A stretch of DNA of 29,124 nucleotides from the NCBI RefSeq assembly GCF_006345805.1, contig NW_021833168.1:1-29124 (forward strand), read 5' to 3'. This document shows positions 6,682 through 22,560 of this stretch, one piece after another (the stretch's first letter is position 1; the number at the start of each line of letters is the position of its first letter). Source of the stretch: Octopus sinensis (taxonomy: Eukaryota). The translations under genes and the position numbers were made by a program. The notes beneath the pieces are model-generated. The model had not been told where the DNA came from and ran no database searches. It saw only the letters and a program-made list of their open reading frames with translations.

Positions 6682-8187
6682 AAACATCCGACACAGCTTC
6701 TGACCAGAGAAATCAGATCACTTCTCTTTGTTCTTCTTTGGTGCACACACTGCTAGTGGAGCGGCCATGTTTACACTGTAAAGGAAAATTGTGCATTCAA
6801 AATTCGTTCACGTGATCATAATAGAACCATAATCATAATCGTGATAATAATAGAACCAAATGTAAGCAGGCATGCCCAGGAGGTAGTGTGATAATATTGA
6901 AGATATGTTATGGCGAAAGTGCGGATAATTATTGACTTCCCGTCGTATATGAAAGTGCTTGCTTAGTCAGCAGCTCATGTTTCACACCACTGCCATCCTC
7001 TGACCAGCTCTGATAGAAAAACAATATGGAGGTTTATTTATATGGAAAGCGTGCGTTCTGCTCTTTGAATCAGTCGATAGGGTCATTTAAGTGGCGTAAT
7101 TTTGTTGAATGTCTTCTTGTTAGGTCTGTTTGGCTGTTCACATATGTTGTTTAATTCTATTGGTTTATTTATTAGTTTAATTTCATAATTAAATCTATTT
7201 TTGGTTTATTGATTGATAAAGGACAAGCCAATTTCTTTGATAAATAGAGTCTGTGTTATTTTTCTAAATATTCCTTTCAACGATAATTATAATCGCAGTA
7301 GAGCGTCGTTTTTGATGTATATCTTTTAACCCTTCATTTGGTCAATGATACAGGAATTATATATAGAGGTATTATGTAGTTGCGTCTATGTATCCGTTAA
7401 ACTAATTAAATTTGTTATGTTGATTATACTTTAGTTAAATTATTTCATTATAAATATGTGCTTATTGAATAGTTTCGAAGTCTTCTATTCTGATTGATAT
7501 TAATAGTTATGGTCCAGTGATTTTTGATAATGTGTAGTTTGAAATTCGATTTAGACAAGATTAAAGGATTTAATGCTAGATTACATATGCGAGGTTGCAC
7601 ATACAATTTATCTGCTAAACTAATTAAGTATGTTTATTTGTTTATTAGAGTTGTCTGTCTTTCGTTAGAAAGAAGTATGTGATCATCGACGAATTGGTGA
7701 GCGTCACGTAATACTTAAAGCATTAATAGCGAGTGAGGTTACTACGGAAAGCGTCATAATAGGTTTTATAATGATTTAGCGGTTCGTGTGTGCGTGTGTG
7801 TGTGTGATAGTGTGTGTGACTGTTGCTTTTTTTTTATTTACAATTTTCCACTCTCAGAAGCACACACTTATTGCGGCGGTCTTTCAGTTCTTCTAAGCCT
7901 TATAAAAGAACTCGGGCGGTTCGGCTTCAAACCAGGCCTTTAGCGATACCCTTAAAGCTAGGAACTGTTTAAAAAATCCCTACTATACGTGCACACACTC
8001 ACGCACACACATACACACCTACTCACACACACACACACAAGTATGTATATATATATATATATATATATATATATATAAATTCGGGGTGAGTACTTGATAA
8101 TTATAAGCACCTGTGTATACCGTTTGGTGGTGTAGGTGGTGGAGTAAATTGATCAAAATAAAATAAAAACATGATGCGAAGGATTCA

Positions 8188-8265
8188 GCGGTACATATGT
8201 TTCGAGCCTTTATTAGACAGATTTATAACAATGCATAATGTATGTCTGTGGCCTTCTTCAGCCGC
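8188..8265 (-). ncRNA. Minimal type I hammerhead ribozyme (left arm)
   Basis: Minus strand: gcgg CTGAAGA aggcc...ggctc GAAAC atat GTA ccgc. Stem I 4 bp, palindromic stem III ACATATGT, GUA site. Confidence 0.8.
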
Positions 8266-8628
8266 GCACAACAGCTTCCACAAGGACATGTGTTACATCA
8301 AAAATTCTTGGTTGGGGATGCAAATCCTCTCATTCACGTACGACATAATGCGGCAGCAGCATAGAATTGAAGCGATTCTATTCTTACACTTTTTATACAT
8401 TTTTTATCCCTCGTCCCGAACTCTCGCCCCTCCATCTTCACCTCTATATATGTATTTATTTATTTACATTACTCAACATCCAATTTCCTCATTCTACATT
8501 GAGAGAAGAAAGAGATGGACGCTTCAATTCTATGCTGCTGCCGCATTATGTCGTACGTGAATGAGAGGATTTGCATCCCCAACCAAGAATTTTTGATGTA
8601 ACACATGTCCTTGTGGAAGCTGTTGTGC

Positions 8629-8706
8629 GCGGCTGAAGAAGGCCACAGACATACATTATGCATTGTTATAAATCTGTCTAATAAAGGCCCGAAACATATG
8701 TACCGC
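8629..8706 (+). ncRNA. Minimal type I hammerhead ribozyme (right arm)
   Basis: Stem I gcgg (8629-32), CTGAAGA (8633-39), aggcc...ggccc, GAAA (8691-94), palindrome ACATATGT (8694-8701), GUA triplet (8700-02), ccgc (8703-06). Confidence 0.8.
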
Positions 8707-8733
8707 TGAATCCTTCGCATCATGTTTTTTATT

Positions 8734-8871
8734 AATATATATATATATATATATATATATATATATATATATATATATATATATATATATATATATATAT
8801 ATATATATATATATAGATATATATATATATATATATATTATATATATATATATATATATATATATAATATA
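8734..8871. repeat. Long (TA)n microsatellite
   Basis: Directly visible; source of the poly-IY ORFs. Confidence 0.95.
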
Positions 8872-8872
8872 T

Positions 8873-9107
8873 GGAGGCGCAATGGCCCATGGTTAGGGCA
8901 GCGGACTTGCGGTCGGAGGATCGCGGTTTCGACTCCCAGACCGGCGTTGTTGTGTGTTTATTGAGCGAAAACACCTAAAAGCTCCACGAGGCTCCGGCAG
9001 GGGGTGGTGGTGATCCCTGCTGTACTTTTTCACCACTCTAAAGGCGGTGCTCCAGCATGGACGCAGTCAAATGACTGGAACAAGTACAAAAAAAAAAGAA
9101 AAGAAAA
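8873..9107 (+). mobile_element. tRNA-derived SINE with A-rich tail
   Basis: A-box-like tggcccatgg and B-box-like ggtttcgactccc. The 3' block aaggcggtgctccagcatgg (9041-9060) recurs at 18862-18881. Ends in an A-rich tail. Confidence 0.85.
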
Positions 9108-21468: not shown

Positions 21469-21779
21469 AATAATAGTAATAATAATGATGACGATATCAC
21501 CCTGTCAACTTAAATGTCTGTGTTGTATCACATGAAGATATTTCGCTGCTGCTCCTACTCTCCTCTCCAAGCTTTCAAATATACTGTAACATGTCTTATC
21601 TTTCACTTGTCTTACAAAGCTGGGTGTGTCTCGGCAAGTGATTGCAGCAAACATGGAAATTAAGTACGAAAGGCAATATAGGCGGCATCCCTATTTGAAC
21701 TCACTACGTGAAGAGATACCGCTAATTATTGCATCCGACGCGCTTACAGAAATAAAAATGATAAAATATTCATTTCAAA

Positions 21780-21950
21780 TTTTGGTACAAAGCCGATTAT
21801 TTAGGTGGTGGGTGGTGTGTGCTGGTTACAGGAAAAGTGAATTATATCGAACGCAGTACTCAACTGTTACTCATTTTTTCGATCGCGAAAGGATGAAAGA
21901 CAAAGTCGACCTCAGTGGAATTTGAACTCAGAACATAAAATCGGACAAAA
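21780..21950 (-). mobile_element. Major-family SINE (copy 7, head missing)
   Basis: cgaaaggatgaaagacaaagtcgacctcagtggaatttgaactcagaac. Confidence 0.85.
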
Positions 21951-22026
21951 AAATGATGAAATATTCTTTTCTACATTATGAACATTATTTACATTTGACG
22001 GATATTTGTCCTCATCTTATTTGTTG

Positions 22027-22072
22027 TTAACAACGTTTCTGCTGATATACCCTCAGGCCTTCATCAGGTGTC
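22027..22072 (-). ncRNA. Degenerate minimal hammerhead (left copy)
   Basis: gacac CTGATGA aggcctgagggtatatcagca GAAAC GTT gttaa. The core is intact, but stem II is partly broken and stem I has a 2 bp deletion. Confidence 0.6.
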
Positions 22073-22406
22073 TTAGGGAAATTTCGAACCAGGGTTCTCA
22101 TTCATAAGGTATTTTTCCTTTATTATTATTATTATTATTATTATTATTATTATTCAGGTCACTGCTTCGAATCGAACGCGGAACCTTGAGGTTAGTAGCC
22201 CGAGATCTTAACTACTACGTCATACGCCCGTGGCGTAGTGGTTAAGAGCGTGGGCAACGAACCTCAAGATTCCGAGTTCGATTCCAAGCTGTGACATGAA
22301 TAATAATAATAATAATAATAATAATAATAATAATAATAATAATAACGATAATAACACCATCGAAAAATCCCTTAGGAATGAGAAAGCAGGTTTGAAATTT
22401 CCCCAA

Positions 22407-22452
22407 GACACTTGATGAAGGCTGGAGGGTATATCAGCCGAAACGTTGTGTT
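22407..22452 (+). ncRNA. Minimal hammerhead (right copy; stems intact, C3 changed to U)
   Basis: gacac TTGATGA a ggctg-gagggtatat-cagcc GAAA CGT T gtgtt. Stem I 5 bp, stem II 5 bp, loopless palindromic stem III ACGT, GUU site. Confidence 0.7.
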
Positions 22453-22560
22453 AACAATAAACAAGATGAGGACAAATATCCGTCAAATGTAAATAATGTA
22501 CATAATACCTCACCTTTTAAATATAGAACTGTATTCTTTTCTACTCTATGTTGAAGTCCC

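Follow-up and report, generated by a model that had tools for sequence, protein, structure and literature searches.

A stretch of 29,124 nucleotides (nt) from the genome of Octopus sinensis (assembly GCF_006345805.1, contig NW_021833168.1, positions 1 to 29,124 of the forward strand; hereafter the window) holds three fold-back units, named here by window position as E1 (the 8078-8733 region), E2 (11421-18054) and E3 (21975-22531). All three are inverted pairs in which the sense strands and the hammerhead ribozyme (HHR) motifs are directed outward from the centre. One of them, E2, is a Penelope-like element (PLE), and the same architecture recurs at loci that code for its relatives. It is probable that each of the three is a scar left by Penelope-type retrotransposition, the AT-rich target having presumably been nicked on both strands so that each 3'-OH would have primed reverse transcription. 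The window itself is eukaryotic DNA, AT-rich (about 23-43% GC) and rich in microsatellites. The features of the three units are listed below, with the evidence for each in brackets.

8078 to 8164, minus strand: 3' extension of the longer copy (copy A) of E1, with an AC-rich stretch in it (not shared by the right arm, whose end is at 8729)
8165 to 8374, minus strand: left arm of E1, the 3' part of copy A (reverse-complement match to 8520-8729)
8188 to 8265, minus strand: HHR of the E1 left arm (descriptor match and sequence)
8375 to 8519, minus strand: unique non-coding centre of E1, additional 5' sequence belonging to copy A (nothing in the right arm pairs with it)
8520 to 8729, plus strand: right arm of E1, the shorter copy B, without a tail (BLAST)
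8629 to 8706, plus strand: HHR of the E1 right arm (descriptor match)
11421 to 11592, minus strand: 3' extension of E2 copy A, abutting (TA)n at 11396-11420 (alignment, flank sequence)
11593 to 14038, minus strand: left arm of E2, the end of the endonuclease (EN) coding region and about 2.3 kb of AT-rich 3' untranslated region (UTR) of copy A (matches 18054-15562)
11778 to 11895, minus strand: HHR of the E2 left arm (descriptor match and sequence)
13872 to 14597, minus strand: linker and GIY-YIG EN reading frame of E2 (motifs, homologues)
14594 to 15561, minus strand: reverse transcriptase (RT) remnant of E2, motif 6/7 through thumb, 5'-truncated at 15561 (homologues)
15562 to 18054, plus strand: right arm of E2, the shorter copy B, without a tail and followed by (TA)n at 18055-18071 (alignment)
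17752 to 17869, plus strand: HHR of the E2 right arm (descriptor match)
21962 to 21974, no strand: left copy of the E3 target site duplication (TSD), TATTCTTTTCTAC (sequence)
21975 to 22226, minus strand: left copy of E3, full length except for at most 2 nt at the 5' end, with no tail (alignment)
22027 to 22072, minus strand: minimal HHR of the E3 left copy (alignment, descriptor scan)
22227 to 22506, plus strand: right copy of E3, with tRNA-like head, (AAT)n, body, minimal HHR and conserved 3' 45 nt (alignment)
22407 to 22452, plus strand: minimal HHR of the E3 right copy (minimal-HHR descriptor)
22507 to 22531, plus strand: 3' extension of E3, ACCTCACCTTTTAAATATAGAACTG, with a T4 run (alignment)
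22532 to 22544, no strand: right copy of the E3 TSD (sequence)

The arms of E1 (8165-8374 and 8520-8729) show one mismatch in 210 positions (99.5% reverse-complement identity by BLAST) and enclose a unique centre of 145 nt (8375-8519), with a 3' extension of 87 nt on the left arm only (8078-8164). In E2 the arms (11593-14038 and 15562-18054) are separated by 1.5 kb (14039-15561) and carry 15 mismatches and nine indels over about 2.44 kb, being otherwise 99.4% identical; here too the 3' extension, of 172 nt (11421-11592), is confined to the left arm. The largest of the nine indels is a 59-nt segment at 16186-16245 in the right arm that is missing from the left. E3 has no unique centre: 21975-22506 is its own reverse complement, the arms (21975-22226 and 22227-22506) being 79% identical by BLAST and 86% by column identity, and a 25-nt extension is found on the right arm only (22507-22531). 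E1 and E2 have (TA)n on both flanks, and a perfect 13-bp TSD (21962-21974 and 22532-22544) brackets the E3 pair. A possible longer, degenerate TSD of E3 (7/11 further matches) and a (TA)nG TSD of E2 were not significant. Pairwise local alignment of the three units gave no similarity above shuffled controls.

In the insertion signature published for PLEs, a 5'-truncated copy lies in inverse orientation, a tail is present on one side only and the targets are (TA)n (PMC8557442). An inverted copy abutting the 5' end and an extension at one end only are found in E1, E2 and E3 alike, with the difference that in E3 both copies are full length, not 5'-truncated. An earlier note on this DNA had described fold-backs with outward HHRs in the three intervals, two of them lying in (TA)n and one with a 13-bp TSD, had seen no obvious sequence shared between them and had called the signature PLE-type. 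The arm alignments, descriptor scans, flank sequences and shuffled controls are in agreement with this description, and the signature matches the published one. The tails, given as 84, 172 and 25 nt, are indeed one-sided and the last two lengths are correct, but that of E1 is 87 nt. The description of E2 as a 6.6-kb element did not survive, as the interval contains two defective 5'-truncated copies instead.

The HHR motifs were sought with a type-I descriptor (helix I, CUGANGA, helix II of at least 4 bp, GAAA, A15.1-U16.1 and H17) whose background was taken from dinucleotide-preserving shuffles of the window. The descriptor matched the arms of E1 and E2 only (8633-8702 (+), 8261-8192 (-), 17759-17862 (+) and 11888-11785 (-)), at a chance rate of about 0.12 matches per shuffled window, and none of 300 shuffles reached four. 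The E1 motif consists of helix I (GCGG/CCGC), CUGAAGA, helix II (GGCC/GGCU) with a long insert, and GAAA, with predicted cleavage after GUA. The E2 motif has CUGAAGA, a long helix II and GAAA, with predicted cleavage after GUC. In both, helix III is an 8-nt palindrome (ACAUAUGU in E1, ACAGCUGU in E2); palindromic helix III is a hallmark of metazoan PLE HHRs, which are thought to work as dimers (PMC4209133). The sole difference between the E1 arms (8212 versus 8682) falls in helix II and changes G-C to G-U with pairing kept, and one of the 15 differences between the E2 arms (11878 versus 17769) is the single mismatched position of helix II.

E3 does not match the type-I descriptor and resembles the minimal HHR of PMC4209133. 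A minimal-HHR descriptor in which C3 was left free found the E3 right arm (22412-22447) as its only match, with 0.0025 expected per shuffle. This right-hand motif reads GACAC, UUGAUGA (C3 changed to U), a bulged A, GGCUG..CAGCC and GAAAC GU U/GUGUU. The left-hand motif keeps CUGAUGA with C3 intact, but its helix II is damaged and 2 nt are deleted at the cleavage site. Read together, the two copies point to an ancestral motif that would have been GACAC-CUGAUGA-A-GGCUG(10-nt loop)CAGCC-GAAAC-GU-U/GUGUU. E3 shows a bulged base after A9, G10.1-C11.1 and a palindromic ACGU without loop 3; a bulged nucleotide after A9, G10.1-C11.1 and a palindromic 15.2-16.2 are the traits given for PLE minimal HHRs (PMC4209133). 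The motifs of E1, E2 and E3 stop 27, 192 and about 58 nt short of the end of the tail-less arm, respectively, and may have ribozyme activity.

The identity of the coding unit follows from its motifs and its relatives. Copy A of E2 runs on the minus strand from 15561 to 11421, is truncated within the RT and is frameshifted, while copy B runs on the plus strand from 15562 to 18054 and keeps the last ~55 EN codons and the 3' UTR; the 5' ends of the two abut and the 3' ends face out. In copy A about 2 kb of 3' UTR lies between the end of the EN frame and the HHR. The minus strand of the centre encodes an RT piece (NYLDV..YIKPN..SNHP) and, in another frame, a linker and EN piece (CNCRNRNKC .. VVYQCTV..RVYIGAT..KQRLNYH .. 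CSLC .. CIH). The latter is a C-terminal GIY-YIG domain lacking CCHH, there being no CC pair in VVYQCTV..RVYIGAT..KQRLNYH. The linker has the form CxCX5C (CNCRNRNKC), and CxxC (CSLC) and CxH (CIH) are present around the conserved E/N (13872-14597(-)). The RT-thumb piece has 65 homologues and the EN piece 4202 relatives among cluster representatives. Three full-length relatives (P0212, P0200 and P0159) carry ADKT, YRDD, CxCX5C, GIY-YIG without CCHH, CxxC and CxH. E2 itself retains only RT motif 6/7 and the thumb, DKT and YRDD being seen in the aligned homologues and RWK at a related locus (L001, below). The RT-thumb and EN pieces are out of frame with each other (14594-14600), whereas P0069, the nearest relative, has one continuous frame across them. 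The linker (14650-15250 (-)) is highly Asn-rich and of low complexity in both E2 and P0069.

The only PDB match of the E2 EN was T4 endonuclease II (2wsh), over GIY..YIG..R with an E value of 0.22. No Pfam model matched the open reading frames (ORFs) of E2, the Pfam RT models matched neither these nor the homologues, and the sole Pfam match in the combined set was a weak one to GIY-YIG on P0159. A word-indexed protein search with the E2 EN domain also returned no match. The traits of Hydra-clade PLEs include a CxCX5C linker, an EN without CCHH, CxxC, CxH, canonical HHRs and (TA)n insertion (Craig et al., 2021, section 11; PMC8557442). The motifs of E2 and the traits of its full-length relatives match this list, and an HHR in the terminal region and insertion into (TA)n are both found at E2. 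As judged from its sequence, E2 is therefore a defective Hydra-clade PLE, present as two 5'-truncated and frameshifted copies. It departs from the clade in length, Hydra elements being described as shorter than about 3 kb whereas copy A, truncated as it is, already measures 4.1 kb owing to its 2-kb AT-rich 3' UTR.

Further evidence came from four loci in other assemblies that code for relatives of E2.

L001: an inverted 5'-truncated copy, then a pseudo-long terminal repeat (pLTR) and full ORF; a ~53-nt extension on the inverted copy matches the start of the next unit
L002: a full-length copy head to head with a truncated copy; 3' ends ~270 nt apart
L003: a single copy
L004: a head-to-head pair; 3' ends ~180 nt apart, with a whole HHR-like motif on one arm only

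The pairs at L001, L002 and L004 are flanked by (TA)n. A head-to-head arrangement with unequal 3' ends is thus present at three of the four loci, and the fold-back signature proposed in the earlier note, when compared with coding PLEs, is the same arrangement. A further Hydra-type fragment lies in the window itself at 28599-28945(+), where the C-terminal part of a GIY-YIG EN (CGLC, CPH; stop near 28945) begins right at (TA)n; the 3' UTR of this piece (28599-29124 (+)) runs off the window, and its family differs from that of E2. Among these six Hydra-clade insertions (E2, L001-L004 and the 28599 fragment) four are fold-backs, every one of which has unequal 3' ends. This suggests that the one-sided extension of the Hydra clade can reach 50-270 nt, beyond the 30-40 bp usually quoted. 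The pLTRs of two of the loci (L001 8907-8950 and 11294-11337; L002 ~11195-11240) also contain an HHR-like motif with CUGAAUGA/G (one extra core base), a weak helix II and helix III ACUCUGAGU, which fits neither HHR descriptor. At L003 (~11160-11340) about 22 nt of reverse complement of the PLE 3' end lie tail-to-tail with it across a short (TA)n and may represent an extremely 5'-truncated second insertion.

E3 is a unit of a different kind. Its right copy contains an A box, TGGCGTAGTGG (22231-22241), and, 34 nt on, a B box, AGTTCGATTCC (22275-22285), so that RNA polymerase III (Pol III) promoter boxes stand at the 5' end with tRNA-like spacing, a co-occurrence with an estimated chance of ~3e-5. 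The starts of the two copies coincide, to within 2 nt, at one tRNA-like 5' end. Over the final 45 nt ahead of the tail the copies are nearly invariant, being otherwise 14% diverged. The T4 run in the extension may serve as a Pol III terminator, and E3 ends in neither poly-A nor a simple repeat. Since the A and B boxes stand at the 5' end of both copies, E3 is, on these sequence features, a discrete promoter-bearing unit resembling a short interspersed element (SINE) and carrying an HHR, not a truncated PLE. It was most likely moved in trans by a PLE enzyme and offers the best evidence among the three units for such trans-mobilisation. We propose, tentatively and at rather less than even odds, that E3 represents a SINE class in which a tRNA-type Pol III promoter is paired with a PLE-type minimal HHR and 3' module and which is mobilised in trans by the PLE RT/EN. 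If this is true, the unequal head-to-head pair of the E3 type would be a diagnostic scar of PLE enzymes acting on short Pol III transcripts, usable genome-wide to assign orphan HHR repeats to PLE partners.

Ordinary SINEs are also present in the window. Six copies of a SINE of ~250 bp (~1000-1200, 2530-2730, 5440-5640, 11160-11395, 21800-21961 and 22545-22745) share the core GGAATTTGAACTCAGAAC (0.02 expected by chance), and every copy ends in a microsatellite, unlike E3. The copy at about 11160-11395 has E2 inserted in its (TA)n tail, and E3 lies between two copies, its TSD overlapping the 5' start of the downstream one. Fragments of the RT of long interspersed elements (LINEs) are found at 19655-20038 (+), with a YLDD motif, and at 26334-26774 (+), in the C-terminal region, the closest database proteins being 71% identical. 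LINE partners for ordinary SINEs thus coexist with PLEs in this genome. Tracts of (TA)n, (CA)n and (CATA)n at 8000-8100, 10100-10250, 18370-18800, 24450-24520, 27520-27650 and 28330-28600 yield dozens of sub-threshold Rfam microRNA matches; those to mir-1277, mir-297 and mir-3149 were rejected as artefacts of microsatellite composition.

The nature of E1 is more equivocal. Its centre is non-coding, with stops in all frames and no similarity to EN or RT, and local alignment of E1 and E3 with PLE proteins gave nothing above chance. E1 may be either a short non-coding dependant of PLEs or a deeply truncated PLE terminus. According to the second possibility E1, and many pairs like it, would be the terminal few hundred bases of an autonomous PLE left by two deeply 5'-truncated copies, not a member of a passenger family, and we give this close to an even chance, falling just short of it. 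PLE insertions are described in the literature as heavily 5'-truncated, and Cervera and de la Pena interpreted HHRs paired on opposite strands at distances of 100-700 bp as truncated PLEs (PMC4209133). In addition E2 shows that ~2 kb of non-coding sequence can lie upstream of the HHR in this clade, and the missing coding signal of E1 therefore does not discriminate. No PLE in the window, however, shares sequence with E1, and the explanation is inapplicable to E3, both copies of which reach the tRNA-like 5' end. The claim of the earlier note that PLEs mobilise short HHR RNAs is partly supported, by E3, which bears both promoter boxes and a PLE-type scar, but not by E1, which has no feature separating a passenger family from a truncated PLE terminus.

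Whatever RNA was copied, the shared anatomy can be accommodated by the Penelope-type mechanism. Both strands of an AT-rich target would be nicked and each 3'-OH would prime reverse transcription of the element RNA. Two cDNAs would then extend toward each other from the 3' region of the RNA. Those of E1 and E2 would break off at separate 5' truncation points, those of E3 would run to the 5' end of a short RNA, and in each case the two would be joined head to head. If reverse transcription could start at alternative internal sites near the 3' end, one arm would retain an extra 3' segment, the tail. Inward cDNAs copying the same 3' region would account for an HHR on both arms, for differing truncation points, for the lack of inverted microhomology and for one longer arm. 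Such a scheme is in agreement with the finding that purified PLE protein cleaves AT-rich DNA and extends both strands, unlike R2 or L1, and that it initiates reverse transcription at two internal positions, separated by the length of the genomic tail (Frangieh et al., 2024; PMC11167929).

A single insertion can also acquire inverted segments by snap-back (hairpin) second-strand synthesis on a single cDNA or by L1-style twin priming, and the arms of E3, only ~8 nt apart, are as expected of a hairpin. Twin priming, however, predicts adjacent non-duplicated parts and a single 3' end, whereas here the same 3' region including the HHR is present on both arms. A snap-back copy should pass through the tail into the flank and not stop 87 or 172 nt short of it, and the inner junctions of E1 and E2 show no inverted microhomology. 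We therefore regard this origin of the fold-backs as unlikely. Very unlikely, in our view, is that the pairs are two independent adjacent insertions, DNA-level palindromes, foldback transposons similar to miniature inverted-repeat transposable elements (MITEs) or assembly artefacts: PLEs do tend to land in or beside existing copies and long palindromes are error-prone in assemblies, according to the literature, but in three families the 5' ends abut directly without intervening target sequence, the E3 pair as a whole is enclosed by one TSD, the one-sided extension leaves termini that are non-complementary and so not the inverted repeats of a MITE or foldback element (for DNA transposons a 13-bp TSD is also atypical), and the 14% divergence of the E3 arms and the unique centres of E1 and E2 argue against chimaeric reads.

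Several results weigh against Penelope-type insertion of all three units, or against trans-mobilisation of the short ones. E1 and E3 share no sequence with E2 (alignment) or with the 28599 PLE fragment (window BLAST), so that neither has a partner PLE here. Further copies of E1 or E3 were found neither by BLAST within the window, where each family is seen once, nor in metagenome pattern scans, a prokaryotic-genome scan or a spurious-ORF search, collections outside which the source genome lies, nor by a literature search with the SINE core. The 28599 fragment has no inverted partner on its 5' side, and the tails of E1 and E2 (87 and 172 nt) exceed the 30-40 bp quoted for other PLE clades. The E3 arms are 14% diverged and yet the TSD is perfect, which has a P of about 0.14 if both are of the same age. 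The Pol III SINE that the earlier note saw among the HHR units has its A and B boxes at both 5' ends of E3 but no recognisable tRNA: ARAGORN found no tRNA cloverleaf for the E3 head, and the Rfam tRNA model had no match on 21960-22545. Finally, the Rfam hammerhead covariance models gave no match at gathering threshold or at E<=10, either on the whole window or on slices of 136-586 nt, and it was because these curated models were without a match that the descriptors were tested against shuffles.

If the Penelope-type reading holds, the occurrence of the same scar on three kinds of unit (a PLE with coding sequence, a short HHR unit that is non-coding and an HHR unit with a tRNA-like head) is structural evidence that PLE enzymes mobilise small ribozyme RNAs, a hypothesis so far based on co-occurrence and pLTR similarity. 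The scar, in which inverted copies with outward ribozymes and unequal 3' ends sit in an AT-rich target, would also provide a simple rule by which orphan HHR repeats could be sorted. PLEs are poorly annotated, and fold-back insertions confuse both assemblers and repeat finders. The window adds one clear instance each of a PLE scar on a short HHR unit and on an HHR unit that is tRNA-headed, together with the indication that Hydra-clade extensions can be long.

With Hydra-clade PLEs (PMC8557442) E2 has in common the GIY-YIG domain without CCHH, CxCX5C, CxxC, CxH, a terminal HHR, (TA)n, an inverted truncated copy and a one-sided tail. It differs from them in being 5'-truncated and frameshifted with no direct pLTR at the locus, in its ~2 kb 3' UTR where Hydra elements are described as <3 kb in all, and in an extension of 172 nt as against 30-40 bp. 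The HHRs share with PLE minimal HHRs (PMC4209133) the type-I core, a helix III that is either short and palindromic or missing, which implies action as dimers, and, in E3, the bulged base after A9, whereas E1 has an A.C mismatch at 10.1/11.1 and both E1 and E2 have very long helix II inserts. Pairs of minimal HHRs on opposite strands 100-700 bp apart were reported in Schistosoma in 2014 (Cervera and de la Pena; PMC4209133), and E1 and E3 are exactly such pairs, although the published ones were not dissected into arms, tail and target. Poseidon, a PLE of Anolis (PMC11167929), shows AT-rich cleavage, both-strand extension and two internal RT starts that define the tail, behaviour which would explain head-to-head arms with unequal 3' ends; it belongs to another PLE clade, has a tail of 30-40 nt and was studied in vitro, whereas E1-E3 are known as sequence.

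A tRNA-derived Pol III head combined with an HHR in a short non-coding retroposon, as in E3, has been described for Sm-alpha and Sj-alpha of schistosomes (Ferbeyre, 1998; Laha, 2000, as cited in PMC2770079 and PMC6765202). Those elements have canonical active HHRs and are largely tandem, whereas in E3 the HHR is of the PLE minimal type and lies close to the 3' end, and the unit shows an inverted pair, a tail and a TSD. The metazoan non-LTR retrozymes (PMC7229834; bioRxiv 10.64898/2026.07.22.740005) are likewise short, non-coding and equipped with HHRs; they occur alongside PLEs, on which they have been proposed to depend. They differ in forming head-to-tail tandem arrays of 150-450-bp repeats with canonical type-I HHRs and circular RNAs. 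No direct repeats were found within E1 or E3 by BLAST and their HHRs are of the minimal type; being neither tandem nor equipped with a canonical HHR, the two units fall outside the retrozymes as strictly defined. That small animal HHR repeats are non-autonomous dependants of PLEs has already been proposed in the same two reports. The interpretation offered here thus looks largely anticipated in the literature, and what looks modestly new is E3, a SINE-like unit with a tRNA-type promoter that would use the PLE machinery.

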